From: Vitrella brassicaformis CCMP3155
Lineage: Eukaryota; Protista; Chromerida
Direction: 5' to 3'
Assembly: GCA_001179505.1 (NCBI GenBank)
Contig: CDMY01000704.1
Location: forward strand, 1 to 28,837
DNA: 28,837 nt
In this document: positions 1,901 to 28,345 of the stretch, piece after piece
How positions within the stretch are numbered: position 1 is the stretch's first letter
Layout of the letters: the number at the start of each line of letters is the position of its first letter
The notes under the pieces: generated by a model
Told to the model about the DNA's origin: nothing
Database searches by the model: none
What the model saw: the letters and a program-made list of their open reading frames with translations, nothing else
Translations under genes and position numbers: made by a program

Positions 1901-2742
1901 TGTCGCGCTGACATGCCGCTGCCTATACATATATGTCATCATGGTTGGTCCCATTGTATCCACGCTTCGTTATGTTGGCGATTGGTGCGATGTTGGCCAT
2001 GGCTCAGTGCAGTGGGCCGAGCTATTTGCTACCGGTTACACGGAGCTCGTAGCTCGCAGCCTTCGCATGACCATGGCGGACAGCTCACCATCGCCCTGGG
2101 CATCGTGCACCGTGACACAGGTACATACCCACNNNNNNNNNNNNNNNNNNNNNNNNNNNNNNNNNNNNNNNNNNNNNNNNNNNNNNNNNNNNNNNNNNNN
2201 NNNNNNNNNNNNNNNNNNNNNNNNNNNNNNNNNNNNNNNNNNNNNNNNNNNNNNNNNNNNNNNNNNNNNNNNNNNNNNNNNNNNNNNNNNNNNNNNNNNN
2301 NNNNNNNNNNNNNNNNNNNNNNNNNNNNNNNNNNNNNNNNNNNNNNNNNNNNNNNNNNNNNNNNNNNNNNNNNNNNNNNNNNNNNNNNNNNNNNNNNNNN
2401 NNNNNNNNNNNNNNNNNNNNNNNNNNNNNNNNACACACAGATCACCCACTGGTGGTCTACGTGTACAGTGACACTGGGTTGGTTTTGGTACTGCTCACGG
2501 GGAGCACACACACCTACCTCTTGTGGGTGTCTGTGGTTCTCGGTTCAGTAGCGTGTCGGGTGTCTGACTGGCCATGCATTACACGCCTTCACCGTTTCGT
2601 GTTTGACCTTCGATGGACCGATTCCTGCTGTCTACACCGTTATCTACGACGTACAGCCACGAACGTTGACCGTTGATCCCGACTCTCGGCACGCAACTCA
2701 CGTTCGCTTACGGCATTGACACCGACATACACACGGTCGACA
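1901..2742 (+). repeat. 5' LTR (contains N gap 2133-2432)
   Basis: 1901-2120 matches 10932-11151 and 2433-2742 matches 11273-11582. Three substitutions found by eye in ~530 aligned bp. Confidence 0.93.
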
Positions 2743-2760
2743 TGGGCGCAAAAGCGAACC
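2743..2760 (+). promoter_or_regulatory. Candidate primer-binding site
   Basis: TGGGCGCAAAAGCGAACC begins with TGG immediately after the LTR terminal CA. Cognate tRNA not identified. Confidence 0.4.
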
Positions 2761-2786
2761 CCTGACCAACGACAACGGGACAGACG

Positions 2787-5526
2787 ATGTCATCAGAAGA
2801 CCCTCCCAACCCACCACTCCCAGCAGCTGAGGACGCCCAGGGGTCTGATCAGCCCTCGGGGCAGCCCCAGCCCCTCCAACCCCGGGAACTCGCCACACCC
2901 GCGCCAGGAGTACGTGACGTCTCCCCAACACCAGTGTCGGCCCCGGCGGGGCAGCAGAGGGGACGGAATGCTGTGGAGGCCTACAAGTATGATGCGTCGA
3001 CGTCGCCCTTGGCTCCCGTAGCGTCAGGGGGATCCTCGAGGCTCGATAGGGGGCCTAGTCTAGGGCCAGTGGAGGTGCTCGCCAGTGCGTTTGGGAGGGC
3101 CATCTCCCAGCGCGCATGGACACAAGAGCAGCTGGAAGACCTCCAGTGCGGCCTTGCAGACGTCTTATGGGAGGTCAACCCAGCAAATCCAGCCAACCAC
3201 CACCTGACCCAGACAGAGATACAGCAGAGGGTCCAGCAGGGCAATGCGGGCGACGAGCAGGGAAGAGGCACCGGCGGCCTCGGCTTGTCTGCCAACACGA
3301 ACGGTGCGTCGGAGGGCGTCAGTGGCCCAGCACCACCCCCACCACCACCCCAACCCCAACTAGCGGTCATCCCACCCCCCGAGCAGTCGCGCAACGACGC
3401 CGGGAGACCGTCAACCACGGAGCAGACGTCCACGAGTGCAGCAGCGAGTGCAGCAGCAGCATCAGCCCCACCAGCACAACAGTACACCAGCAGCGCTGAC
3501 CCATTGATCACACCCCTACCGCCAGCCATCGGACACCACCATCGCCCCACCGCAAGGGCGGATGATGAGATAGCACGGTGGGCCAGGGAGGATGTGGCGG
3601 CGTGGGCGGCGGGGATACAAGATGCAGAGCTGACGAACATCGACAACGAACTGAAGTACCACCAGGAGCGACAGCTAGAGGTCGAGCGTCGCATCCAGAC
3701 TGTCACGCTGGGCGACTCACACACCAGCGCAGTTCCGCTGCAGCAGCTGCTCCACTACAAGCAGCTGATCGGACAGGACGTCCAGCGATGTCGACGTCTA
3801 CGCTATGCGCGGATCGCCGCCATCAATGCTGCCCAGACAGCTGGGCGGCAGAGGGCGGACCCGCCCATTCAGGGGCTGGGGGAGCGACTGGCGGCCACCC
3901 ACTCGGCTGCGACGGTGTCATACCGCGGTGACGCCCAGCAGCATATCACCGACCAGCCCCCGCCCCCGCCACCACCTCATACCACCCGTGTTTTGGATCC
4001 ACTGTGGACTGCGTCGGCACCAACGAGCGGCCGGCCGGCCACTACTGCACAGCCCCAGAGTGGGAGTCAGGCCGGATCATCGGTCTACCCACCAGCAGTG
4101 GTGGTAGCTGAGGGCGGCCAGAGGCGATGTGCACACGGAGCTGCTGAGGAGGGGGGGTCGGTGTTTGTGAGGTCGAGTGACCAACGTGACCGTCAGGCGC
4201 GCACATCGACGTCATGGGCCGACCCACGGTGCCAAGGGCGTGGCACTGGGGCGGACAGAGGGAGTCCACCGGGTAGTGATGATGATAGATATCGCAGCCA
4301 CTCGTCGAGGCGGCGGACTCGNNNNNNNNNNNNNNNNNNNNNNNNNNNNNNNNNNNNNNNNNNNNNNNNNNNNNNNNNNNNNNNNNNNNNNNNNNNNNNN
4401 NNNNNNNNNNNNNNNNNNNNNNNNNNNNNNNNNNNNNNNNNNNNNNNNNNNNNNNNNNNNNNNNNNNNNNNNNNNNNNNNNNNNNNNNNNNNNNNNNNNN
4501 NNNNNNNNNNNNNNNNNNNNNNNNNNNNNNNNNNNNNNNNNNNNNNNNNNNNNNNNNNNNNNNNNNNNNNNNNNNNNNNNNNNNNNNNNNNNNNNNNNNN
4601 NNNNNNNNNNNNNNNNNNNNNATCGGACAGTGAGCGACTCAAGGAGAAGAGAGAGCTGCTGTACGGCCTCCTCATGACACGACTCGACCGCCGACTCTTC
4701 AACATAGCGACGGCCACCGTCGGCACCTTGGCCATCGAGCAGATGAACGGGACAGCGCTGTGGAAGGCGTTGGTCAGGCACATGGAGCCACAGGCAGACC
4801 ACCACCTCCAGCTGCTCGCCGACCAGCTCACCTCCCTCCCCCGGGCACCGACGGCAGAGATCGCCGCAACGAACATCCGATCGATCGAGAATGAGATTCT
4901 CGACGCCGGCGGCACGCTCGACACGGAGAAGACTCGCCTGCAGCGCTACAAGGACACCCTGCCGACTCACATGTTGCCCCACGTCAAGCTGATCGAGACG
5001 GCGAGACATCAAGTCAACCACATGCTGGAGAGCAACCCCGAGGCCGAGCTCGCAGGCTTGCGTCGCCTCCGCCCTCTCACCATGGAGGAGCTGTCCACAC
5101 AACTCATCCGTCACGAGCGGAACGAGAACCCCAACCTCGACTACCTGCAGCCGGTGCTGCAGCTGCCCGGCGGCACTGACAAGAAGGGGGCGGCCATGCT
5201 GGCCAACCACAAGTCAGGTGGGGGGCAAGGACGACAAGAACAAGGGGGCGGCGGCGGCAACCGGCAGGCCAACCAGCCCACGTACGCGTCAGGCACGCCT
5301 CCCCGGGGCCAGAAGTGGACCCCCGTCCCCAAGAGCAGCGGTGCGAGCCGGCGGACGCAGCAGACCTCTGGGTCAGCGTCTGGTGGGGGCAACAAGGCGC
5401 CAGGGCACGGCAACCACGAGAGCCTACCGAGGCCCAAGGCCAGCGACGGTCTGGTGTCGCAGGAGGAGATAGACAAGAGGACGGCCGAGAACAAGTGCCC
5501 ACGGTGCGGCAAGGGACCTCACGAGT
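2787..5526 (+). CDS. Gag-like polyprotein, copy 1 (gap-interrupted, runs into a gap inside the zinc knuckle)
   Basis: ATG at 2787, Pro/Gln/Ala-rich N-terminus, copia Gag core (LYGLLMTRLD...NGTALWKALVRHME), CPRCGKGPHE. 3537-5526 is a diverged duplicate of 5827-7687. Confidence 0.8.
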
Positions 5527-5826
5527 NNNNNNNNNNNNNNNNNNNNNNNNNNNNNNNNNNNNNNNNNNNNNNNNNNNNNNNNNNNNNNNNNNNNNNNNNN
5601 NNNNNNNNNNNNNNNNNNNNNNNNNNNNNNNNNNNNNNNNNNNNNNNNNNNNNNNNNNNNNNNNNNNNNNNNNNNNNNNNNNNNNNNNNNNNNNNNNNNN
5701 NNNNNNNNNNNNNNNNNNNNNNNNNNNNNNNNNNNNNNNNNNNNNNNNNNNNNNNNNNNNNNNNNNNNNNNNNNNNNNNNNNNNNNNNNNNNNNNNNNNN
5801 NNNNNNNNNNNNNNNNNNNNNNNNNN

Positions 5827-8800
5827 CACCATCGCCCCACCGCAAGGGCGGATGATGAGATAGCACGGCGGGCCAAGGAGGATGTGGCGGCGTGGGCGGC
5901 GGGGCTATATAATGCAGAGCTGACTGACATCGACAACGAACTGGTGTACCACAAGGAGCGAGGGCTAGAGGTCGAGCGTCTCATCCAGGCGGTCACGCTG
6001 GGCGACTCGCACACCAGCGCAGTCCCGCTGCAGCAGCTGTTCCACTACAAGCAGCTCATCGGACAGGACGTCCAGCGATGTCGACGTCAACGCTATGCGC
6101 GGATCGCCGCCATCAATGCTGCCCAGACAGCTGGGCGGCAGAGGGCGGACCCGCCCATTCAGGGGCAGGGGGAGCGACTGGCGGCCACCCACTCGGCTGC
6201 GACGGTGTCATACCCGGGTGACGCCCAGCAGCATATCACCGACCAGCCCCCGCCCCCGCCACCACCTCATACCACCCGTGTTTTGGATCCACTGTGGTCT
6301 TCGTCGGCACCAGCGAGCGGCCGGCCGGCCACTACTGCACAGCCCCAGAGTGGGAGCCAGGCCGGATCATCGGTCCACCCACCAGCAGTGGTGGGGGCCG
6401 AGGGCGGCCAGGGGCGATGTGCACACGGAGCTGCTGAGGATGGGGGGTCGGTGTTTGTGAGGTCGAGTGACCAACGTGACCGTCAGGCGCGCACATCGAC
6501 GTCATGCGCCGACCCACGGTGCCCAGGGCGTGGCACTGGGGCGGACAGAGGGAGTCCACGGAGTAGTGATGATGATAGATATCGCAGCCACTCATCGAGG
6601 CGGCGGAGTCGGACGCGGAGCCCTGAGGACCAGAAGGGCTTCAACCCGCCTGCCGAGCTGAAGTACGACAAGGACGTCTTCAGCAGGTGGCGTGTGTGGA
6701 AGAGGAACATGGAGAGTGTCGCCATCTTCTCATGGAGACTGAAGGAGGTCCTCACCGATGAACCAGACCCATCGGACAGCGAGCGACTCAAGGACAAGAG
6801 AGAGATGCTGTACGGCCTCCTCATGACACGACTCGACCGCCGACTCTTCAACATAGCAACGGCCACCGTCGGCACCTTGGCCATCCAGCAGATGAACGGG
6901 ACAGCGGTGTGGAAGGCGTTGGTCAGGCACATGGAGCCACAGGCAGACCACCACCTCCAGCTGCTCGCCGACCAGCTCACCTCCCTCCCCCGGGCACCGA
7001 CGGCAGAGATCGCCGCAACGAACATCCGATCGATCGAGAATGAGATTCTCGACGCCGGCGGCACGCTCGACAAGGAGGAGACCCGCCTGCAGCGCTACAA
7101 GGACACCCTGCCGACTCACATGTTGCCCCATGTCAAGCTGATCGAGACGGCGAGAAACCAGCTCAGCGGCATGATAGACAACAACCCCCAGGCCGAGCTC
7201 GCAGGCTTGCGTCGCCCCCGCCCTCTCACCATGGAGGGGCTGTCCACACAACTCATCCGTCACGAGCGGAACGAGAACCCCAACCTCGACTACCTGCAGC
7301 CGGTGCTGCAGCTGCCCGGCGGCACTGACAAGCAGGGGGCGGCCATGGTGGCCAACCACAAGTCAGGTGGGGGGCAAGGACGACAAGCACAAGGTGGCGG
7401 CGGCGGCAACCGACAGGCCAACCAGCCCACGTACGCGTCAGGCACGCCTCCCCGGGGCCAAAAGTGGACCCCCAAGGGCAGCGGGGCGAGCCAGCGGACG
7501 CAGCAGACCTCTGCGTCAGCGTCTGGTGGGGGCAACGCGTCTGGTGGGGGCAGCAAGGCGCCAGGGCACGGCAACCACGAGAGCCTACCGAGGCCCAAGG
7601 CCAGCGACGGTCTGGTGTCGCAGGAGGAGATAGACGAGAGGACGGCCGAGAACAAGTGCCCATGGTGTGGCAAGGGAGGCCACGAGTACTACGAATGCTA
7701 CAGGCACCGAGCCGAGCTCATCAAGAGAGGTGGCCGCTTCGCCAACCTACCACCCAGGTGGTCGCCCAAGCAGACGGGTGGGGGCAAGGGCAGAGATGGG
7801 GGTGGCCATGCCGTCAGGCTGGCCGTCTCTGAGGAGCCAGAGCCAGCTGCAGCACTCGGCAACGCACTCACACCACTCCATTCACCTGGTCCGCCCCCCA
7901 GCACCGGCTCTGACGACTCTGCCTACTACGCAGCGGCCGAGCCGTCGGTCGGCCCTGACCTCTCGGCCCCTCACAGCACCCTCTTCCATTTCAACGAGGA
8001 CCGCCAGCAATTGCCCGATGTGAGTGACGGGGAGAGCGCCACATTGCTTCTGGAGGGTGACGGCGAGGCTGCTGCCATGGACGGCGGCGCCGCAACACAC
8101 ATCTTCCGAGACAAGAAGTTCCTCATCCCCGGCTCAGAGCGGCCCACTCCGGGGCTCACCATCAAGACGGCACATGAGGGCCAGGACCTGGATATCGAGT
8201 GCGAGGGCAAGGCCATCATTGGCGTCACCGACGAGAACGGCTTCCAGCGCCTGATGAAGCTGTCGCCCGTGTATGTCGCCCCTGACTGCCCTACCACACT
8301 CATCAGCGAGCGCCAGCTGCACGCAAGGGGTGGTGGTGTCCACAAGGTCGCTGGGGAGGCTGACCACGCCTACCTCTATTGGCATGTTGTGGGCATCGAC
8401 GGCATTCGGCAGACCTGTGTCGTCCCTCTGACGTGTGCGGTGGGTGGCTATCGCCTGATGGTGTGGCCGTGGACAACGGCCGATGACAAGAGGACTGATG
8501 AGAGGACAGCGAGAGACCCGCTGCAGTCTGGTGGGGGCCACACACACGAGGGAGTGTGTCCGAGTGACTCGAGCGGTGATGGTGGTGACGCTGGTGGTGC
8601 CAACGTGGGCGACCACCGGCAACAACAGAGGATTTGGACGAGTCTGGTGTATCTGATGATGACGGTGCTGATCATGTGTGCACTTCTGAGCTGCATGAGG
8701 ATCTACACCACCGACATCACGACACGATGGCCTCCAGCGACGCAGCCGTCAGCAACCATCCCCACGGTGCGTCACTCACACCATCCATTCGGCCCGTCGC

Positions 8801-10503
8801 TCTTCCTCGATCACTTCAGCTACCCCCTCAATCCATCCCCGTCTCCTGGGCTGCCATTCCTCGGGGGCAGCGAGTCGGGTGGGGGCGAGACGTCGACATG
8901 GACGTCCATGACTGACACAGGGGGTGCTGCTGGGGCGGATGGAGACACCACTCAGCAGCAGCAGCAGCAGCAACAAGTGCAGCAGCCCCCATCGCAACAC
9001 GTGCAGCTAGAGATAGCGGAGCGACCTCAACGAGACAAGAGGCCTCCGGCACGTGCAGAGGAGGAGAGATATCAGTGGCATCGCCCCATCCCCCCTCTGG
9101 ACCCGACGTGTCGCTCTGGGCAGCAGGAGAGCCACCCTGCTACTGGTGTACAGCGGGAGCATGCGTCAGGAGGGGTGCAGCCGGACGGCGAGAGCCGGGC
9201 TGCTGTTGATAATGTTGTCGTCGAGGCGGGCGAGAGCCCAGCCGCTGAGCCCGTGTCTCAGCAGGAGCGTCCTGAGGGCGAGGGCGCCGTGATAGCCGTA
9301 CCCGTAGAGGAGGAGGAGCCCAGCGACGGAGCCCAATTGCCGTCAGCGCAGTCCTTCGGGAGCCCTCCCACCCAGCCGTCTAAGGCGGCGGCAATTCCCC
9401 CCATACCACCCCCAGCACATCAGCCCAGTGACGCCCCCCTCCACCACAGCAACATGCACTGCGCTGGTGGCGATGCGCAGCCGGCCGACCACAGGAGCGA
9501 GGCATACGAGTCACAGCTGAGGGGGCAAGCCGAGAAGGAGAGGAATGCGGCCGACCAAGCCAAGAGGAGCTTGGGTGAGGAGGGGATGGAGGCGGCCTTC
9601 GTGGTCGACTGTTTGGTGGGGGAGGGGACCATGGTGACCTCCCAGAACCCCACTGCTGACGTCATATTTGCGGCAACACTTGAGGGCTACATCAACGGCA
9701 CCAACGGCACACTACACGACCACCAGACGCACGCCCTCTGGGCGTACAAGGGCGATGTGGGTGTGACCAACGACGACTCGACCAAGTCATCCGTCGAATG
9801 CCTCATCCATCCGTCTGGAGCAGCTGGGGGGGCAGAAGAGACCTTCCTGGTCAACTGCATGAAGGTGGGTGGGGGCCTGTACTGCACAGCGCCTCCCGAC
9901 AACCCCTCGGCTGCCGTTATCTTTGAGGCGACACCTGCGACTTGGGATGACACCAGAAGCACCCCCATCGGCCGACTACGACACGACTTTTGTGCACATG
10001 ACGGCGATGGGGTGGCTGAGTGCCTGAATGACCTGCCGGCCCGCTCGACAATCAAGGCGGCCACTGCCCCACTGACATCACACTCATCAGCAGCATCCCC
10101 TGCTGCAACTACCCCTGCATCCCATTTCGGGACGACCCTACGGCCGCCCGACATCCCCCTGCCGCGCGGCGGGGACATCGACAGAGTCGAGAAGGGGATG
10201 AGTGCGGTAGGGGCGGTGGGTGGCTACTTGACCGACGGCAGCTCGCCATCGAAGGCCCACTCAATTGCCGACGGCATGCTCTTCAGCCACTTCGGCAACG
10301 TGTCGCGAATCGGTGACGACAGCCTCGTCATCCATCAAGCGACACACGCCCTCACTCTCGACAGCGTAACGGCACCGGTGATACGACAGATGGTGCTCGA
10401 CAGCAACGGGGCGGGGGCAGACTACGCCAAGTCCAACAAAATGGACAGCCGCTTCTTGCGGCATGAGGATGTGTGCTACCACCACGTCTGTCAGCTTGTC
10501 TAG
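5827..10503 (+). CDS. Gag-protease polyprotein with atypical C-terminal half (5' part lost in the gap or supplied by copy 1)
   Basis: Frame open for 4677 nt. CCHC knuckle CPWCGKGGHEYYEC at 7657-7698. Aspartic protease motif DGGAATH at 8080-8100, followed by copia-like VYVAPDCPTTLISERQL. RNase H-like tail VLDSNGA...RHEDVCYHHVCQLV. Confidence 0.85.
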   Translation, partial: HHRPTARADDEIARRAKEDVAAWAAGLYNAELTDIDNELVYHKERGLEVERLIQAVTLGDSHTSAVPLQQLFHYKQLIGQDVQRCRRQRYARIAAINAAQTAGRQRADPPIQGQGERLAATHSAATVSYPGDAQQHITDQPPPPPPPHTTRVLDPLWSSSAPASGRPATTAQPQSGSQAGSSVHPPAVVGAEGGQGRCAHGAAEDGGSVFVRSSDQRDRQARTSTSCADPRCPGRGTGADRGSPRSSDDDRYRSHSSRRRSRTRSPEDQKGFNPPAELKYDKDVFSRWRVWKRNMESVAIFSWRLKEVLTDEPDPSDSERLKDKREMLYGLLMTRLDRRLFNIATATVGTLAIQQMNGTAVWKALVRHMEPQADHHLQLLADQLTSLPRAPTAEIAATNIRSIENEILDAGGTLDKEETRLQRYKDTLPTHMLPHVKLIETARNQLSGMIDNNPQAELAGLRRPRPLTMEGLSTQLIRHERNENPNLDYLQPVLQLPGGTDKQGAAMVANHKSGGGQGRQAQGGGGGNRQANQPTYASGTPPRGQKWTPKGSGASQRTQQTSASASGGGNASGGGSKAPGHGNHESLPRPKASDGLVSQEEIDERTAENKCPWCGKGGHEYYECYRHRAELIKRGGRFANLPPRWSPKQTGGGKGRDGGGHAVRLAVSEEPEPAAALGNALTPLHSPGPPPSTGSDDSAYYAAAEPSVGPDLSAPHSTLFHFNEDRQQLPDVSDGESATLLLEGDGEAAAMDGGAATHIFRDKKFLIPGSERPTPGLTIKTAHEGQDLDIECEGKAIIGVTDENGFQRLMKLSPVYVAPDCPTTLISERQLHARGGGVHKVAGEADHAYLYWHVVGIDGIRQTCVVPLTCAVGGYRLMVWPWTTADDKRTDERTARDPLQSGGGHTHEGVCPSDSSGDGGDAGGANVGDHRQQQRIWTSLVYLMMTVLIMCALLSCMRIYTTDITTRWPPATQPSATIPTVRHSHHPFGPSLFLDHFSYPLNPSPSPGLPFLGGSESGGGETSTWTSMTDTGGAAGADGDTTQQQQQQQQVQQPPSQHVQLEIAERPQRDKRPPARAEEERYQWHRPIPPLDPTCRSGQQESHPATGVQREHASGGVQPDGESRAAVDNVVVEAGESPAAEPVSQQERPEGEGAVIAVPVEEEEPSDGAQLPSAQSFGSPPTQPSKAAAIPPIPPPAHQPSDAPLHHSNMHCAGGDAQPADHRSEAYESQLRGQAEKERNAADQAKRSLGEEGMEAAFVVDCLVGEGTMVTSQNPTADVIFAATLEGYINGTNGTLHDHQTHALWAYKGDVGVTNDDSTKSSVECLIHPSGAAGGAEETFLVNCMKVGGGLYCTAPPDNPSAAVIFEATPATWDDTRSTPIGRLRHDFCAHDGDGVAECLNDLPARSTIKAATAPLTSHSSAASPAATTPASHFGTTLRPPDIPLPRGGDIDRVEKGMSAVGAVGGYLTDGSSPSKAHSIADGMLFSHFGNVSRIGDDSLVIHQATHALTLDSVTAPVIRQMVLDSNGAGADYAKSNKMDSRFLRHEDVCYHHVCQLV

Positions 10504-10632
10504 GACGGGCTGCTGCGGGTGGTCCACATCGCTGGAGCCGACAACCCATCAAACATCCTCACCGAGCCAGTGGACCGCGCCGCCCTGGAGAAGCATCTCA
10601 AGATGGTGCCAGTGAAGCTGAGCAGTGAGTGA
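10504..10632 (+). pseudogene. In-frame continuation of the copia RNase H C-terminus after TAG 10501-10503
   Basis: Translates DGLLRVVHIAGADNPSNILTEPVDRAALEKHLKMVPVKLSSE*, resembling the copia consensus G...V.HI...DNPADILTK.L. Confidence 0.8.
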
Positions 10633-10912
10633 TATGAATCAGTTGGCTCTTCATGGTGTGTGAGTGCATGTGTAATGCCCTCGGTCATCCATGAAGGGCT
10701 GGTGGGTGTTGGGTTCATCGCATTGCATTGGTATGTGTGTGTATGGTATCACATGCGTGATGGGTGCACACATTCATATCCATGCATGATGGTGTTCATG
10801 ATGGTTAGCTAGGTAGCTATTCACTGCATGTGGGCGTTTCTTTTCACCCATGACGGTCAAGTGATTTTCACTTTTATGTGCGCTTGACCGACACACTCTC
10901 ATTTGCTCGCGT

Positions 10913-10931
10913 GGGTACATGGGGGTGGGGA
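10913..10931 (+). promoter_or_regulatory. Polypurine tract
   Basis: GGGTACATGGGGGTGGGGA directly abuts the TG of the 3' LTR. Confidence 0.8.
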
Positions 10932-11582
10932 TGTCGCGCTGACATGCCGCTGCCTATACATATATGTCATCATGGTTGGTCCCATTGTATCCACGCTTCG
11001 TTATGTTGGCGATTGGTGCGATGTTGGCCATGGCTCAGTGCAGTGGGCCGAGCTATTTGCTACCGGTTACACGGAGCTCGTAGCTCGCAGCCTTCGCATG
11101 ACCATGACGGACAGCTCACCATCGCCCTGGGCATCGTGCACCGTGACACAGAATGCTCTTGGTGTCTGTCCATGATGGCATGTGGTTGGGCTGCCTTTGT
11201 TCTGACGTCGTGTACATCTCATCGGCTGTGATGTGGTCATCTATGGTCGTGGATATGTTTGGGATGACAGAGACACACAGATCACCCACTGGTGGTCTAC
11301 GTGTACAGTGACACTGGGTTGGTTTTGGTACTGCTCACGGGGAGCACACACACCTACCTCTTGTGGGTGTCTGTGGTTCTCGGTTCAGTAGCGTGTCGGG
11401 TGTCTGACTGGCCATGCATTACACGCCTTCACCGTTTCGTGTTTGACCTTCGATGGACCGATTCCTGCTGTCTACACCGTTATCTACGACGTACAGCCAC
11501 GAACGTTGACCGTTGATCCCGACTCTCGCCACGCAACTCACGTTCGCATACGGCATTGACACCGACATACACACGGTCGACA
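10932..11582 (+). repeat. 3' LTR (651 bp)
   Basis: TGTCG...CGACA, followed by TSD ATCTC; matches the 5' LTR. Confidence 0.95.
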
Positions 11583-11635
11583 ATCTCTGCGAACTTCTAA
11601 AAAAGCAAGATCCACTGGCATAACGGAAGTAAGCA

Positions 11636-11870
11636 TCAACTGACTGAACACACGAAACGCGCCAGTTTGTGGTGGATGGGATGTTTCTCCTTTGTCCGTT
11701 CATGCAGCTTGTTGAGCTTAGCCAGCTCTTCACGCAGGCAGTCAGGCCATTCTTGCCGCAGCCACTTCTCATCAAAGTCCCGCGCGAGCCTTCGAGGGAC
11801 GTCACTCTTGACAGCGCCACATAGATGACATGAGGAATCGTTGCCCTCGTCTGAGGACATTCTCTGTCAT
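11636..11870 (-). pseudogene. C-terminal remnant of a PIF1-family (Helitron/Helentron-like) SF1B helicase
   Basis: Minus strand reads HVIYVALSRVTSLEG (motif VI YVALSRV at 11803-11823). After a frameshift it reads RDFDEKWLRQEWPDCLREELAKLNKLHERTKEK. Confidence 0.75.
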
Positions 11871-12230
11871 CCATGGTGTATGTATGTATATACGTCAGGG
11901 AATGCAAATTGGGAGGTCCCTCGTCGGCTGCCCCGGCGGTGTTACCCCGGGGTCTTGTCCGTGGGTGGACAACGCTATGGAATAGCGCTTACTCGATGCT
12001 GATTGACCAATCGATAAGAGACACAATTAAGAATAAATGACAACAAGCACACAAGTCAAGTCGACCTGATGTCACGACGAGTCAAAGGAGGCAACGAGTC
12101 ACAATGGCACTGGCTACGCACACACACACAAGTCGAACGTACAAATGCACACGTCTCAAGACTAGTCAGTGTCCGTCCTGTCAGTCCTATCCCTCTACCC
12201 GCTTTCCTGTCTTTGTCGGCCACGCGCAGA

Positions 12231-12828
12231 GACGCCAATCAGCAGAGGAAGCACGAGGCACCAGGGGCTGGTGCGATGGAGCTGTTGATCAAACATACCC
12301 GCCGAGCTGCGGGGGATGACGTCTCGACCATGAGATCTTGTCGGGGAAAGGTTGGGTGCGTGAGACAGCCCTCGCGTGGGGTCTTCGGTCTCTTCTGGCC
12401 GGCTGGGATGATCACGATGGGGTGAAGCGTTGAATGGAGGGACACGGAGACACCGCTCCGTGCAGTGGCCTTGCTGACGACGGCTGAGAGCACAAGTACC
12501 TCTGGGGGAGGACGGAAGGCTCAGATGCTTGAAATCGACGAAGACAAAAGATGGATGTCGATGGGTCGGAAAATGGGTGACCAGATGAAGCAAATGAGGC
12601 AGGAATGGGCCCTTTCGATGAGGAAATCCTCATTCGATGAGGATTTCCTCATCCGGGTGAGGAAATCCTCACTCACAATAGTTTCACGATGCGAGCTTGG
12701 CAACCGGACCTAAAGCACCACGCCCTTTATCCTTTGCTCTGAGAAAAGGACGCATCGCTCTGCTTTCTCCTTTCAGAACTGTGAAACACGAGGGCTACGG
12801 AATCCTCCCTCCCCTTTTCCAGCGAAGA
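12231..12828 (+). repeat. 598-bp segment duplicated at 13960-14557
   Basis: Apparently identical at offset 1729. The second copy starts at the edge of an N gap. Confidence 0.92.
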
Positions 12829-13144
12829 GAGGCAGCGATACCATGCCATGCCATATCCCATGCATGGGCGCGGTGCGGTGCAAGCCTGCCTACGTGTGTG
12901 TCCATGTGAATCTATCTATCTATCTATCTGTCTGTCCATGGAATCGGTCCCACCCGTGGCTGGCGCCATTCGCCGGCACAGCACAGTCTAGTGGGGTGGG
13001 GTGGGGCGGGTGGTGCATTGAACCATAACACATTTCTGTCGTACCGATTGCCGTCAGTCCTAGGGTGCTCCCATAAACCGCTGTTGCTCGAGGGAAGCCC
13101 CCCTAGTCCCCCCTGCGCTCTTTGCGTCCGCTCGCCCTCCAGCC

Positions 13145-13659
13145 ATGCTCCCACTGCTGCTGCTCTCTTTGTTTCTCGTCGCGCAGCCGCCTGCAATTCG
13201 CGGCCAGCCAGCGGAGGTGACGGTCAAGTATGCGATTCTCGTCTACGCATTCTGGGCTCCATGGCCCGCGACGGTCATCGTCCCACCCTTCGACTACTAT
13301 TCTGAGCGCCTCAACAGCGGCCACTGGAATGGCAAACGGCTCACGGGGGGGAACACGACGATTCGCCTCGAAGGAGACATGATTGAATATAATCGCACTA
13401 CCGGCTGGACCGCGGAGCAGATGGATGCCCTGACCGACGACACCTACGTCGCGCTGATAAGCTATGGACTCGCATACGATGCTATACTCCCTCTTGCGCA
13501 GCACAAGAACCTCCTGCATGCCGTGGGTTGGTCGCTCGACGCCGTCTCAGCGGATTCATTCGTGTTTGACAAATATCCCTTATCTCCTGAAGCCGGTCAG
13601 GGCATCCTCTCGCCCTTCAAGACACGCGGCTACACCAAGTGTGCAGTGATAAGCTCAGT
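13145..13659 (+). CDS. 5' fragment of a secreted or membrane protein (signal peptide; possibly a type I periplasmic-binding-like extracellular domain)
   Basis: MLPLLLLSLFLVAQPPAIRG signal-peptide-like start. Frame is open for ~171 codons of globular composition until the gap. Domain guess is by impression only. Confidence 0.6.
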
Positions 13660-13959
13660 NNNNNNNNNNNNNNNNNNNNNNNNNNNNNNNNNNNNNNNNN
13701 NNNNNNNNNNNNNNNNNNNNNNNNNNNNNNNNNNNNNNNNNNNNNNNNNNNNNNNNNNNNNNNNNNNNNNNNNNNNNNNNNNNNNNNNNNNNNNNNNNNN
13801 NNNNNNNNNNNNNNNNNNNNNNNNNNNNNNNNNNNNNNNNNNNNNNNNNNNNNNNNNNNNNNNNNNNNNNNNNNNNNNNNNNNNNNNNNNNNNNNNNNNN
13901 NNNNNNNNNNNNNNNNNNNNNNNNNNNNNNNNNNNNNNNNNNNNNNNNNNNNNNNNNNN

Positions 13960-14557
13960 GACGCCAATCAGCAGAGGAAGCACGAGGCACCAGGGGCTGG
14001 TGCGATGGAGCTGTTGATCAAACATACCCGCCGAGCTGCGGGGGATGACGTCTCGACCATGAGATCTTGTCGGGGAAAGGTTGGGTGCGTGAGACAGCCC
14101 TCGCGTGGGGTCTTCGGTCTCTTCTGGCCGGCTGGGATGATCACGATGGGGTGAAGCGTTGAATGGAGGGACACGGAGACACCGCTCCGTGCAGTGGCCT
14201 TGCTGACGACGGCTGAGAGCACAAGTACCTCTGGGGGAGGACGGAAGGCTCAGATGCTTGAAATCGACGAAGACAAAAGATGGATGTCGATGGGTCGGAA
14301 AATGGGTGACCAGATGAAGCAAATGAGGCAGGAATGGGCCCTTTCGATGAGGAAATCCTCATTCGATGAGGATTTCCTCATCCGGGTGAGGAAATCCTCA
14401 CTCACAATAGTTTCACGATGCGAGCTTGGCAACCGGACCTAAAGCACCACGCCCTTTATCCTTTGCTCTGAGAAAAGGACGCATCGCTCTGCTTTCTCCT
14501 TTCAGAACTGTGAAACACGAGGGCTACGGAATCCTCCCTCCCCTTTTCCAGCGAAGA
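13960..14557 (+). repeat. Second copy of 12231-12828
   Basis: Identical sequence, followed by the 61-bp LTR-like terminus 14558-14618 that the first copy lacks. Confidence 0.92.
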
Positions 14558-14683
14558 TTTACTCATTGCAGAGCAGCGTTAATGAATTCCATGGCCTCAT
14601 TTCAGGCCCCCTGCAATAGCGGGGCACCCGACGAGATGGGTGGTGGGTGTTTCTCTACATGGTGGCCGGCTATATTGACCATG

Positions 14684-15067
14684 TATGGCTGATGTGAGAC
14701 ATCCATGGCCGGCCACCTCGTGGCCAGTCAGGCCAGGATCACGGCCGTCTCCCAAGCGAAGCAACCGAGAGGGGTTGTCTGCAGTGATGCAGTGATTCAC
14801 TGAATGAATGAATGAATGGAATCAATTCATTGATTCACTGACAAGCAAGCACACACTTATGTGACTCGACTGACGCCCTGTCATTGCGGAATGGCGAAGT
14901 GTCTTCTGCTCGCGTCATGCGCGTCGTTTGTGAGTTTCGCACAAGCACTTCACTGCAAATGCGTCACATTCGGATCATTCGGGCCTGTAAGGGCTCAAGG
15001 CTTGCCTAACGCTGGCAAGAAGTCTGTTTTGTCATGAGAAAAAGTCCATTTCACGTGATAACGAATT
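14684..15067 (+). repeat. Left arm of a long inverted repeat (repeat X); partner 17553-17925
   Basis: Reverse-complement match from TATGGCTGATGTGAGAC to CACGTGATAACGAATT, with a few indels. Confidence 0.92.
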
Positions 15068-15068
15068 C

Positions 15069-15220
15069 ATTGTTGCATGCGTCGGTGTGCTTCTCGCAAA
15101 CACTCGTGCTGTGCACGTCTCTGTGACGCATAATTGAACCACCGCTTCGCACGCTGCTTTCCACCCCCGCCCAATTCGCGGCCCGGGGTGCCCACGCAGT
15201 GGGTGCCCCTTACTCGGAAT
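15069..15220 (+). repeat. ~150-bp direct repeat 1 with GC-rich hairpin; partner 16678-16828
   Basis: ATTGTTGCATGCGTCGG...CCCTTAC(T/C)CGGAAT in both copies. Hairpin GGGGTGCCCAC-GCA-GTGGGTGCCCC at 15185-15209. Confidence 0.9.
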
Positions 15221-15539
15221 CTTTAAGAAACAACACGTGCGGCAGACAAAACGTTCGATCACGATCGTATGGAAGAAAAAAGGAAAATCGGTAGCGGTGG
15301 TGTGTTGCTTGCACTACTACAGACACGCCAATATGTCGAACAGCTTCGTGTTCTTTGTCACGTTTGGATCAGTGACCGTTAAACGGATATGCCCTAAAGC
15401 GGCAAGTTATTGGAAAGAGCTTGTCAAGAACGTCTAGGGTGCTACCTGAAACCGCTGATGCTTGAAAATGACCGCGCTTGCTTCTCTGGGAGCGAACTTC
15501 TGAAAAAAGCAAGATCCGTAACGGAAGATGCGTCAACTG

Positions 15540-16155
15540 ACTGAACACACGAACGCGCTAGTTTGTGGTGGATGGGATGTTTCTCCTTTGTTCCGGTCAT
15601 GCAGCTGGTTAAGCTTGGTTTTTCTTGGGTGCCTTTTCGCAGGTCCCTCAGTGCGCATCAACTTTGTCGAGCTTCTGGCGCTTAACGAAAGAGATCTCGC
15701 CGACTATCGTGCAGTGGACTTGGTAGTGGATATGTTTGCAAGACTCCTCTCTGCAAATGCGGTCACCATCGACTGTCTGCTGCTTCCCGCTTGGCGCCGC
15801 AGCCTCTTCTCGCCACTCTCGAAGTCATCGAAGACGTGCAGGAGCGAATCGATGCTGTCGAGCCTTCGGTGTTATCTGCAACCACACCGGTAAGTCCCGC
15901 CAGACACAGCCAGTGTCGGCATTACAGTTCAGCAAAGTAGGCCTTCACGGCTTTGATGACGTGTGTTTTGCCGGTGCCGCCCTCGCCGGTCAGGCACATG
16001 CGCAATGGCGCGACGTATTTGCTGTCCCGCAGGTTTTTGTAGTGGTTCAGCAAGTGGCTGTAGATGATTTGGAAACCCCGCATCTGCTCTTCGTTCAATT
16101 GGTAACGGCTCGCCCAGTCAACAGAGAAGGTCCTGTCGTCGACTTTCTCAGGCGG
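15540..16155 (-). pseudogene. Internally deleted PIF1-family helicase pseudogene
   Basis: Minus strand 16155-15925 reads ...YQLNEEQMRGFQIIY...PLRMCLTGEGGTGKTHVIKAV (Walker A at 15964-15987). After a stop comes LAGLTGVVADNTEGST (motif Ia-like), then TIVGEISFV...LDKVDAH (degenerate Walker B, ~15684-15710). It then jumps to the same C-terminal tail as 11636-11720. Confidence 0.8.
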
Positions 16156-16828: not shown

Positions 16829-16861
16829 AATGTTCAACGCCTGTTCGAGATAATGTGTGCA

Positions 16862-17551
16862 TGACAGCTCAGATCAGTTTAACGAAGTGTGCTCTAAGCT
16901 GAAAGCTGACCTGGTGGTTATCAGCTCGCCAAATTTTTTTCTTTGCGGCCACGACAACCCAACTTTTTTTCTAGGGGGTCTTTTCAAGATCTGCTTTGTG
17001 ATGGTTGTGGAGGGGGTTACTGCGAGGAACGAGTTTGCTTCGAGCTTCAAATCCGCTCACGCGTTCGCGCGAAAAACGGCGGCAAAAACCCGGAAAATCG
17101 GTTTCTGGCTGTTCGGGTTTCTGGTGCGTTTGACGCGCAAGTTTGTGTGTGAGTGCTCCTCTTGTGCTCTGTCCTTACGCAAGCGGTCATCGCTCTGCGC
17201 TCCGTCAAACACGAGAACCAGCCACCGAATGTTGACATTGCCGTCAACAATTGGATCTATGTACCCCGTACACGGCTAGCCGTCAACCCAAATCAGCACA
17301 ATTGTGTCAATGCATGATACATTCCGCCATGCTGTGTTCACACGCAAGCGCTTATGGCTTTTCGTTGCGTCAAAAAGAACTAGCCACTGAAAGTTCACAC
17401 AGTCATCAACCCAAGCGAAACAGAATACATCGTCCACGGCCTGCAAGCGGCCGTCGACGCAAGCGGCCGTCGCTTCTCGCCCCGAAACGAGACTATAGGC
17501 ACTGAAAACTTGCTCACCGCTAACTCAACCGCAATCTCCTCGCACACGCTT
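16862..17551 (+). repeat. Dispersed repeat Y, copy 1
   Basis: Colinear, moderately diverged match to ~21321-21984 (GACAGCTCAGATCAGTTT...CAACCGCAATCTCC...CACACGCTT). Confidence 0.85.
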
Positions 17552-17552
17552 T

Positions 17553-17925
17553 AATTCGTTATCACGTGAAATGGACTTTTTCTCATGATAAAACAGACTT
17601 CTTGCCAGCGTTAGGCAAGCCTTGAGCTCTTACAGGCCCGAATGATCCGAATGCGACGCATTTGCAGTGAAGTGCTTGTGCGAAACTCACAAACGACGCG
17701 CATGACGCGCATTCCGCAATGACAGGGCGTCATGATCAGTCGAGTCACATAAGTGTGTGCTTGCTTGTCAGTGAATCAATGAATTGATTCAATTCATTCA
17801 TTCAATGAATCACTGCATGCATCACCGCAGACAACCCTCTTCGGTTGCTTCGCTTGGGAGACGGCCGTGATCCTGGCCTGACTGGCCACGAGGTGGCCGG
17901 CCATGGATGTCTCACATCAGCCATA
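17553..17925 (-). repeat. Right arm of the long inverted repeat (repeat X)
   Basis: Reverse complement of 14684-15067. Confidence 0.92.
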
Positions 17926-20173: not shown

Positions 20174-20322
20174 CATACATGGTCAACATAGCCGGCCACC
20201 CTGTAGAGAAACACCCACCACCTCCCTCGTCGGGTGCACCGCCGGTGCACCCGGCGGTGCACCCGACGAGGGAGATGGTGGGTGTTTCTCTATAGGGTGG
20301 CCGGCTATGTTGACCATGTATG
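20174..20322. repeat. 149-bp near-perfect palindrome at the end of repeat X
   Basis: 72-bp arms CATACATGG...GCACCGCCGG and CCGGCGGTGC...CCATGTATG, 5-nt loop TGCAC, two mismatches. Continues into repeat X (20323-20424 matches ~14690-14790). Confidence 0.93.
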
Positions 20323-20424
20323 GCTGATGTGAGACATCCATGGCCGGCCACCTCGTGGCCAGTCAGGCCAGGATCACGGCCGTCTCCCAAGCGAAGCAAC
20401 CGAGGAGGGTTGTCTGCAGTGATG

Positions 20425-21176: not shown

Positions 21177-21320
21177 GATGCATGCAGTGATTCACTGAAT
21201 GAATGAACGAATGAATGAATTGAATGACAATATTAATGATCCATCATTGATTGTTGACTGACAAGCAAGCACACAATCGTGTGACTCGAGAGAATGACAG
21301 AGCGATTCGTTCCATGCACA

Positions 21321-21984
21321 CGACAGCTCAGATCAGTTTCACGGATCTTGCTCTAGCTGAAAGCTGAGCTGGTGTGGTTATCAGCTCGCAAACAATTTTG
21401 CGGCCTCCGCAGAACCAACTTTTTTTCTAGAGGGTCTTTTCAAGATCTGTCTTCGGATATCTGTGGAGGGGGTCACTGCGAGGAACGAGTTTGCTTCGAG
21501 GTTCAAATCCGCTCACGCGTTTGCGCGAAAAACGGCGGCAAAAAACCCGGAAAATCGGTTTTTGGCTGTTTTCTCTCGGGTTTCTGGTGCGTTCGCCGCG
21601 CAAGTCTGCGTGTGAGTGGTCCTCTGCTCTGTCCTCACGCAAGCGATTGTCGCTCTGCGCTTCGTGAAACACGAGAACCAGCCACCGAAAGTTGACGGTG
21701 CCGTGAACCCAAATCACCACAACTGTGTCAATGCATGATACCTTTCGCTGCTTTGTGTTCACACGCAAGCGCGCATCGCTTTTCGTTCCGTCAAAAGAAG
21801 AACGGATCACTGAAAGTTTACACAGCCATGAACCATCAGTCACACAATGCATCGTTCACGGCACAACTGCTTTACGCTCTCTTCGTACGCAAGCGGCCGT
21901 CGCTCTTCGGCCGCGCAAACGAGACCATAGCCGCTGAAAACTTGCTCACCGCTAGCTCAACCGCAATCTCCTTGCACACGCTTC
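21321..21984 (+). repeat. Dispersed repeat Y, copy 2
   Basis: Matches 16862-17551. Confidence 0.85.
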
Positions 21985-22490
21985 AAGGTCGATCTGGTTG
22001 ATGAAAGATATGCCCACGGACGCTGCCAGAGACGATTTTGCTTCTAGTCGCAATTGCGCTCTGTCGTTCGGGTAAAAGGTGGCGAACACTGGTGTCGGTT
22101 ACACGAAATTCGGCGTTGTGATATCTCTCGGGACTCTCATTCATTCGATGCAAAAGCATGTATGTCTGATACATCCCGTTATGCTGTGTCTGCACGCCAG
22201 CGGCCATCGCCCTGCGCCGTCTTGAGAAAGAGAACTAGGCACCGAACGTGGGCACAGCTGTGGACCTACACCAGCACGATTGTGTCAAGGCATGATACAT
22301 CTCGCTATGCTGTATTCACACTGCAAGCGGCCATCGCTCTCCACTCCGTCAAAAGGAGCCACCGAAAGTTTACACAGCCGTAAATAATCCCAAAGTAATA
22401 CACCTTTCCAGCTCGGTCCTCACGCATGTGGCCGTCGCTCTCTTCGCCTCAAAAGGAGAACCAGCCCAATAAAGGTTTACGCACCCCAAC
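21636..22490 (+). repeat. Diverged ~100-125-bp tandem units
   Basis: A GCAAGCGGCCATCGCT...AGAACCAGCCACCGAAAG-like core recurs near 21636, 21762, 21887, 22193, 22319 and 22421, and also near 17176, 17341 and 17456. Confidence 0.65.
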
Positions 22491-27405: not shown

Positions 27406-28081
27406 ACGTGTGTATCTGAAGGCTCATCCCTTCATTGATTTGTCCTTGCGTGGGTTCATGCACCGTGTGTCATCATGCACACAACACCAATACGGACACA
27501 CACAGGCCGATGGGCCAGGCTTGGCAACCCTGGCTGGCAACACCTGCGCATGCATTCCTCAGCCAACCCTGCTGGGGCTCGAACACACCCAAATTCTACC
27601 ACTAGACACCCTGATATGGACACAAGTCTGTCGTCCACACCATGTATCCCATCCGTCAGTAGTCGCAACACGCGCACCACCATCGATGGGTCATCTAGCC
27701 ATCAGCAGATGAAGGGAAGAGAGAGAGAGCCCACTCGCCCACGGCGCAGTCGGACCACGAATGCACACGGCGAACATGTGCTCACAGCACCATGAAACGC
27801 CAGATCTCCATGGCCATCACGTCCAGCAGGCACCACGGTGCTCAGATCCACCATCTCGACACGTGCTCATCGAACCATGACCGAGATCTCCTCCAAAACG
27901 TCTCACAAACGTGGCAGGGACCCATAGATCTGACAGATAAAGCACTCCGTGCTGTCGGCTGACCTCTCTTGGCCCTCCAGCGCCATCTTCCTCGTCGCCA
28001 CAAGCCTGCACACCCAGAAACACGACCCGCACACAGCCGTCGAGAGGAACTACCTCTTCCCGACGCTGACCAATCACCTCA
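27406..28081. repeat. Longer copy of the repeat at 1-569
   Basis: See the 1-569 entry. Confidence 0.9.
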
Positions 28082-28345
28082 ACCAAGGAACTACCGCAGC
28101 ACGACGCCTCGCGCCCGGACTCACGTGTCTACCACGAGATGGTCCGTCTCGGTCACCAGCGGCGCTTCATACCTCAGATCTGGCTTACTGCCTCAGCCTC
28201 ACGTGCCTGCCTGGTGGTGGTTGGGTCCGTCATGTGTGTATTACCCTATGGGTGTCAGGTTCGTGACGACGGGGAGAGCCTGACACATCGTCCTGACCAA
28301 TTAATTTGGAAGGCTCTCCCCGTCTATTTTGGAACGAAGCTTTGA
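27790..28345 (+). pseudogene. Possible decayed APE-type endonuclease of a non-LTR retrotransposon
   Basis: Broken frames give FLVATSLHTQ...ERNYLFPTLTNHL and CLVVVGSVMCVL, loosely like the NxYAP...R..F..L and I..GDFNC motifs. Catalytic residues are not preserved. Confidence 0.25.

Follow-up and report, generated by a model that had tools for sequence, protein, structure and literature searches.

How does a retrotransposon that lacks the enzymes for copying and integration come to stand in a genome with the marks of a recent insertion? We address this question for positions 1,901 to 11,582 of a 28,837-nucleotide stretch of DNA (hereafter, the window) from the chromerid alga Vitrella brassicaformis CCMP3155 (contig CDMY01000704.1, forward strand), where long terminal repeats (LTRs) enclose a long open reading frame (ORF) without integrase (IN) or reverse transcriptase (RT). 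In our judgement, this window element is likely to be a recently inserted, non-autonomous LTR retrotransposon of the Ty1/copia type that was mobilised in trans, is a recombinant, and was copied from a spliced template. Copia elements that lack enzymes and exploit their relatives are routine and well known from plants, and the window element documents such a case in a close free-living relative of the apicomplexan parasites. Its interest rests mainly on introns in the LTRs of its family, which keep their positions in copies of ~75-99% identity and have all been lost in one integrated copy.

The insertion is delimited by the following features, given in window coordinates:

1896-1900, + strand, left target-site duplication ATCTC, read directly and the same as 11583-11587
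1901-2742, + strand, 5' LTR with TG..CA ends, aligned to the 3' LTR and broken by a gap of N at 2133-2432
2743-2760, + strand, primer-binding site (PBS) region, TGGGCGCAAAAGCGAACC, its motif compared with relatives
10921-10931, + strand, polypurine tract (PPT), GGGGGTGGGGA, read directly
10932-11582, + strand, 3' LTR of 651 nt with TG..CA ends, an intron-less form of the ~1050-nt family LTR
11583-11587, + strand, right target-site duplication ATCTC, read directly
15220-15616, + strand, element-free paralogue of the insertion site, matching both element flanks

Direct LTRs with TG..CA ends and a target-site duplication (TSD) of 5 bp, as in Ty1/copia elements, frame the window element. The two LTRs are identical at 219 of 220 and 308 of 310 aligned positions, so that 3 of 530 differ (99.4-99.5% identity). 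Nearly identical LTRs, an intact TSD and a PPT had all been named in a preliminary description made from the letters of the window, and each was borne out. The left flank (1618-1870) is 81% identical to 15220-15484 and the right flank (11589-11719) 87% identical to 15492-15616, an imperfect match in which ~30 nt of the left flank have no counterpart in the paralogue. The PBS motif (TGGGCGCAGCA...) also lies 3' of the LTR in two relatives, C621 and C164, and the window copy carries a 3-nt deletion. As to the primer, no tRNA lay at the matches of the PBS pattern, including those outside the element family; a search with an initiator-tRNA pattern, itself unreliable, found nothing.

Two relatives, C418 and C164, were located by a DNA search of the genome. 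An ORF of 1186 aa in C418 matches RVT_2 (E-value, 3e-28), SH3_retrovirus (2e-7) and, weakly, rve, in copia order, and contains the D..D..E motif of integrase and the LYVDD motif of RT; C164 matches RVT_2 (6e-19). Over the 40 nt upstream of the LTR, which include the PPT, the window element and C418 agree at 39 of 40 positions, and their LTR ends are 96-97% identical. The preliminary description had proposed a search for autonomous elements sharing the LTR, PBS and PPT, and this search was successful: an autonomous-type relative with IN, RT and matching cis signals (C418) is present in the same genome, and the PBS motif is found in C621 and C164.

The interior of the window element could be compared with C418 along a single frame:

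5827-10503, + strand, one open frame of 1558 codons plus TAG (10501-10503), comprising gag from family residue ~251, protease and degenerate pol
7657-7698, + strand, gag zinc knuckle motif CPWCGKGGHEYYEC, CX2CX4HX4C
8077-8331, + strand, protease beta-barrel with the motif MDGGAATH (Pfam Pol_BBD, E-value 0.01)
8614-8790, + strand, first unmatched segment, 59 codons, in the integrase position of relatives, containing a hydrophobic helix (LVYLMMTVLIMCALLSC)
8791-9786, + strand, retained IN-RT linker, 332 codons, homologous to C418 pol residues 305-534 and 577-670
9832-10008, + strand, diverged tandem duplicate of the linker end, ~59 codons, with 35% protein identity to 9583-9816
10009-10338, + strand, second unmatched segment, ~110 codons, in the position of RT and the first half of RNase H
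10339-10599, + strand, RNase H/pol C-terminal tail, 87 codons, corresponding to C418 residues 1100-1186

The frame 5827-10500 begins at the first base of its contig and lies wholly within the gap-free contig 5827-13659, so the earlier report of a frame open for more than 1500 codons stands at 1558 codons, with no gap crossed. After the protease, the 666 codons of 8503-10500 contain no stop, compared with 14-23 stops in each of the other five frames; shuffled versions of this region had a mean of 18.6 stops and were open in 0 of 5000 trials. A gag CCHC knuckle and an aspartic protease are both present in the window, with Pfam scores under the curated cut-off. Their homologues in C418 match zf-CCHC_5 (E-value, 1e-4) and Pol_BBD (7e-5), and the DGGA variant of the protease motif is common to the window element and C418.

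Downstream of the protease, parts of pol are missing and others are retained. Pfam found neither rve nor RVT_2 in the window ORFs, which gave only weak Pol_BBD and zf-CCHC matches, and nothing in any frame of the window element corresponds to C418 residues 1-305 (integrase) or 671-1099 (RT with the first half of RNase H). Likewise, the copia order protease, IN, RT and RNase H with an RVT_2-type RT was not found in the window element by Pfam or by tblastn, blastp and phmmer comparison with C418 pol. The absence of IN and RT, as first described, was thereby confirmed. Homology of the linker to C418 was detected by tblastn, blastp and phmmer (E-values, 4e-65 and 1e-11), with C418 residues 535-576 deleted from it. 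The duplicate of the linker end was recovered by self-blastp (E-value, 9e-7) and as a third phmmer domain (0.003). The RNase H tail is interrupted by the in-frame TAG at 10501-10503, 33 codons ahead of the family's usual end. An earlier estimate of ~600 codons of novel sequence in place of pol therefore had to be reduced: ~390 codons are the family's IN-RT linker and the duplicate of its end, 87 are the RNase H tail, and only ~170 (8614-8790 and ~10009-10338) are unmatched. In sum of its parts, the window element resembles C418 and C164 in LTR ends, PPT, PBS motif, CCHC gag, DGGA protease, linker, RNase H tail and 5-bp TSD, and differs from them in lacking integrase, RT and half of RNase H and in an LTR of 651 nt instead of ~1050 nt. 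It is a family member by descent, without autonomous status.

We searched further for the source of the unmatched codons. With 8332-8790 as query, nothing in the Vitrella genome matched past residue ~94, and the second segment gave only two chance-level genomic matches (E-values, 0.03 and 0.5). Comparison of both segments with all retrieved family loci by blastn (word size 7) and tblastx yielded nothing significant in any frame, indicating that they are not frame-shifted remnants of IN or RT. A word search of 5.8 billion proteins with 8503-10500 returned none at an E-value of <=1e-3 among proteins of 366-1165 aa, and the ESM Atlas held no usable match for the unmatched region. A single-sequence AlphaFold2 model of the region was mostly of low confidence, with a mean predicted local distance difference test score (pLDDT) of 41.9 and a predicted template modelling score of 0.24; no IN or RT fold was visible in this model, which is too poor to prove much. 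It contained a hydrophobic helix in 8614-8790 (pLDDT 67-78) and a helix in the linker. The 17-residue hydrophobic stretch LVYLMMTVLIMCALLSC encoded in 8614-8790 forms part of this predicted long helix, the only part of the region modelled with good confidence.

A global alignment of the tail to C418 RT and RNase H with low gap costs gave only short and unconvincing blocks, among them a possible linker remnant (YLTDGSSPSKAH against YLATGTRPDLLY) that was not relied on. Splicing as the origin of the pol deletions, by analogy with the 3-kb copia intron of Drosophila, was rejected on account of their unclean junctions, which are filled with unmatched sequence, and of the lack of GT..AG borders in the relatives.

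Lacking IN and RT, the window element cannot copy or insert itself. Its RNA would instead have been packaged, reverse-transcribed and integrated by the enzymes of IN/RT-bearing relatives. The pattern of divergence is consistent with such a history. Nucleotide identity to C418 is 90-97% from 5827 to ~7826 and then falls abruptly, just past the zinc knuckle, to 65-74%; it climbs again to 83% near the end of pol, to 39/40 at the PPT and to 96% in the LTR. Synonymous divergence (dS) from C418 follows the same course, with 0.07 in the front part of gag and 0.35-0.69 thereafter. The step in identity and dS at ~7827 indicates that the window element is recombinant. On this sequence comparison, gag and the LTRs appear to come from the C418 subfamily, and the stretch from protease to tail from a distant lineage that was already deleted. 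Template switching between co-packaged RNAs, the usual route to such a recombinant, may have joined them. Co-packaging would be expected to result in recombination with an enzyme-bearing subfamily, and the recombinant thus supports the inferred parasitism.

The same divergence dates the deletions relative to the insertion. The pol remnants are 65-83% identical to relatives at the nucleotide level, that is, 24-35% diverged, and the linker duplicate retains 35% protein identity, whereas the LTRs are 99.4% identical. The deletions therefore predate the insertion, which means that the deleted form was copied and inserted as such, with enzymes required in trans. The initial proposal of a parasite mobilised by an autonomous partner was accordingly upheld in its core, namely the missing IN and RT, the 99.4% identical LTRs, the TSD and the relative C418; the partner itself was not found intact, as the C418 copy is damaged.

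That the template was spliced is suggested by the LTRs. Five intron-bearing LTRs of the family were delineated at four loci:

L024:5030-6095, intron-bearing LTR
L022:180-1232, minus strand, intron-bearing LTR
L021:149-1200, intron-bearing LTR
L021:8808-9859, intron-bearing LTR
L038:1501-2573, minus strand, intron-bearing LTR

LTRs are ~1050 nt long in C585, C418, C164 (both LTRs) and C212, compared with 651 nt for the 3' LTR of the window element. Alignments, including MAFFT, showed that the difference consists of five segments of 66-113 nt each that are exactly absent from the window 3' LTR. In all five longer LTRs, the segments start with G|GTA(C/T) and end with (C/T/G)CAG| on the sense strand, with the exception of the C164 3' LTR, which has GC in place of GT at the intron 1 donor. 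C621, as far as it is assembled, contains intron 5 and the end of intron 4. The corresponding exon-exon junctions in the window 3' LTR are 11151|11152, 11224|11225, 11294|11295, 11365|11366 and 11434|11435. The segments resemble the introns of the host HSP70 gene, which are 47-109 nt long, CA-rich in the first half and GT-rich in the second, and end in TGCAG or TTCAG. The exact loss of GT..AG segments that marks a spliced retrocopy was thus found for five of five segments, against five LTRs at four loci and, in part, C621. No other assembled LTR of the family lacks the five introns. One of the intron-bearing copies, C585:22029-23094 (L024:5030-6095), is a solo LTR with its own 5-bp TSD, TCGGA. 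Another LTR start (TGTCGCG) lies at C164:169159 (L021:9860), directly 3' of the 3' LTR of the C164 element, and may belong to a tandem LTR or to an adjacent second element.

The direction of change can be read from the distant copies. The C164 LTRs are only ~75-78% identical to other LTRs, and over the first 220 nt of the LTR, identity to the window element is 78-89% for C164 and C212 and 99% for C585. Because the distant LTRs of C164 and C212 have all five introns at matching sites, the introns are ancestral, and the state of the window element is derived. For the same reason, we rejected a gain of the segments as introner-type insertions; a collapse of tandem repeats was also rejected as the cause of the short LTR, as the family LTRs contain no such repeats. 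We infer that the template RNA of the window element was spliced, and a single passage through spliced RNA would explain all five losses. No long ORF was found in the spliced LTR, which places the introns in untranslated sequence, and a TATA-like run at LTR positions 22-36 suggests a location for them in the leader, 3' of the transcription start.

Every generation of an LTR element includes an RNA stage, and introns within it should therefore vanish unless intron-retaining RNA is specifically chosen for packaging. One tentative explanation is that the genomic RNA of this family is normally packaged with its LTR introns retained, for example through packaging or export signals within the introns, and that the window element is a rare escapee from the spliced messenger form; we hold this to be possible but rather doubtful. 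If true, it would provide a natural marker, readable from sequence, by which the RNA pool of an LTR retrotransposon that is translated could be told from the pool that is replicated. How retroelement RNA is split between translation and replication is an open question, for which a family with LTR introns gives a genomic read-out.

Several observations weigh against this account of trans-mobilisation from a spliced template. No fully intact autonomous partner is assembled: the frame of the C418 copy is broken at two places and its 5' LTR is missing from the assembly, and several stops interrupt C164. Neither a second copy of the architecture without IN and RT nor a second intron-less LTR was found in the assembly, and repeated mobilisation of the deleted lineage, given the single copy, is inferred from divergence. 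Moreover, ~170 unmatched codons have been kept open, which would not be predicted for a dead passenger. The splicing is read from genomic sequence, and the two LTRs as assembled disagree: 2121-2132 of the 5' LTR (GTACATACCCAC) is the start of intron 1 and matches the intron-bearing C585 LTR, although the 3' LTR lacks intron 1 and reverse transcription should yield identical LTRs. From 2433 onward, the 5' LTR lacks introns 3-5, as the 3' LTR does. We suspect that the contig end before the gap at 2133-2432 was extended with reads from intron-bearing copies; otherwise, the account is incomplete.

The copy counts themselves are lower bounds because the short-read assembly collapses the element family. 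LTR starts 99% identical to that of the window element are found at contig ends (C526:57218-57443 and C819:1-114), implying at least two more young copies with unassembled interiors, and fragments spanning protease and IN occur on the 3-kb contigs C70 and C44. By the standards set for TR-GAG and BARE-2 elements, the window element has the expected composition (no RT or IN, with LTRs, PBS, PPT and an open gag kept), whereas several deleted copies with different TSDs were not found, the window copy being the only one in the assembly, again as a lower bound. The preliminary description had regarded a single-copy architecture in neutral decay as evidence against its proposal. Half of this picture was encountered: the architecture is single-copy in the assembly, but its frame has not decayed.

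A rival reading, the strong form of the preliminary description, is that pol was replaced by new in-frame coding sequence under selection, giving a modified Gag-protease fusion with a new function, such as a membrane-binding or particle-modifying tail. The unmatched parts contain no stops, which in shuffled sequence has a probability of ~0.10 for 8614-8790 and 0.006 for 9787-10347, while other frames contain 14-23; the hydrophobic helix in 8614-8790 is confidently predicted; and dN/dS against C418 is 0.46-0.84 in the linker and RNase H tail. However, a pairwise dN/dS below 1 may derive wholly from the autonomous lineage, and with a single copy, selection specific to the deleted lineage is not measurable. 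Only ~170 codons would be new, the remainder being the family linker and its duplicate, and these codons have no relatives in their own genome, among the 5.8 billion proteins or in the Atlas. In addition, the mean pLDDT is 42 and the premature TAG truncates the tail. We consider such a replacement unlikely.

Two further explanations were weighed. Short-read mis-assembly of a repeated family could have produced the apparent absence of IN and RT or of the LTR introns: the assembly is Illumina-only, was gap-filled and was broken by REAPR, the scaffold contains duplications at gap flanks, and other family copies stop at contig ends (C526, C819) or lie on tiny contigs (C70, C44). Yet 5827-13659 is one contig without N, in which gag, the 3' LTR and unique flank with the TSD are joined without a break; the deletion sites are filled in frame by sequence absent elsewhere in the genome; and five precise GT-AG removals cannot arise from repeat collapse in an LTR without tandem repeats. 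An artefact on this scale is very improbable. Alternatively, a full-length element may have inserted and then decayed in place, without ever being mobilised in the deleted state, as its single-copy architecture in the assembly would allow. The interior would then have had to reach 24-35% divergence, with a duplicate at 35% identity and 1558 codons still open, while the LTRs came to differ at only 3 of 530 positions, and the loss of introns from both LTRs needs a passage through RNA. To decay in place we give almost no credence, and an old, enzyme-less lineage mobilised in trans remains the reading that we prefer.

The 5' third of the window element calls for separate treatment. The V. brassicaformis assembly is Illumina-only; SSPACE was used for scaffolding, GapFiller and IMAGE for filling gaps, and REAPR for breaking (PMC4501334). 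The window contains four gaps of exactly 300 N each, so that gap length is a convention and being in frame across a gap is meaningless. The first gap (2133-2432) lies inside the 5' LTR. The second and third lie inside a duplicated gag, and all edges of this duplication are contig edges. The additional copy reads as follows:

2787-5526, + strand, first copy of gag, split between the short contigs 2433-4321 and 4622-5526, ATG at 2787, open throughout, with a truncated CCHC knuckle at the gap

Within the duplicate, 3537-4321 is 94.9% identical to 5827-6611, and 4622-5526 is 93.1% identical to 6771-7687. The two gag copies differ by a dS of 0.05-0.06, as against 3 of 530 positions for the LTR pair, and gag is single in the relative C418. 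As written, the frame from the ATG at 2787 stops at 5853. The figure of ~1800 codons mentioned earlier, the sum of 250 and 1558, can be reached only by collapsing the duplicate on homology, with 3537 and 5827 on matching codon boundaries; as a literal join, it crosses two unsized gaps and the 93-95% identical gag duplicate.

The scaffold does generate duplications at gaps, as seen from a 598-nt exact duplicate (12231-12828 and 13960-14557) around the fourth gap (13660-13959), which reflects either an error of gap filling or the LTR pair of a small element. For the gag duplicate, we lean, with little more than even confidence, towards a misplaced sister copy, fragments of which would have entered the scaffold as the short contigs 2433-4321 and 4622-5526. 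A real duplication that predates the insertion is conceivable, though we think it rather less probable than otherwise. Positions 1901-5826, the 5' third of the element, were patched together in assembly, and caution is required for this part and for the 1800-codon frame, both of which depend on a short-read scaffold that is unreliable.

TR-GAG elements and BARE-2 are known from plants as LTR retrotransposons that have lost autonomy but kept gag. The window element is like them in its intact LTRs, PBS and PPT, its open gag, its lack of RT and IN, and its dependence on a related autonomous family. It differs from them in retaining more of the polyprotein (besides gag, a protease, the IN-RT linker and the tail of RNase H, within a single frame of 1558 codons), and in being a recombinant of two subfamilies with one assembled copy and spliced LTRs.

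Splicing of copia elements is otherwise known in connection with Gag expression, examples being an intron of ~3 kb in Drosophila copia and, in Arabidopsis EVD and barley BARE, the shGAG RNA (PMC5580714, PMC3735527). In those elements, as would hold here, the host spliceosome acts on the sense transcript of the element itself, and a spliced RNA without most of pol is a normal copia product. Their introns, however, are located within coding sequence and function in Gag expression, whereas the five introns described here lie in the LTR, and the pol deletions of the window element lack GT-AG borders and are not the clean outcome of splicing. Introns within LTRs are described as a first observation in a 2026 preprint on long-read transcripts of maize, where they are long (mean, 1303 bp) and belong to non-coding, LTR-contained RNAs (bioRxiv 10.64898/2026.05.08.723830). 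The two cases share canonical introns inside the LTR itself. The maize introns were detected in transcripts, whereas those of Vitrella are seen in the genome as five short introns conserved across diverged copies, together with one integrated copy that lacks all five. A phrase search of the open literature found nothing closer than the maize LTR introns. Within this limited search and to our knowledge, several short, conserved LTR introns with an integrated intron-less descendant represent a new variant.

Another repeat family is found downstream of the element, at 14619-15067, 17553-17925 and 20174-20424 and at 16860-17554 against 21319-21986, in direct and inverted orientation and with 79-98% identity. 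The two ends of the window are likewise repeated in each other, 1-99 being an exact inverted copy of 27406-27504 and 92-572 a 97% identical direct copy of 27606-28084.

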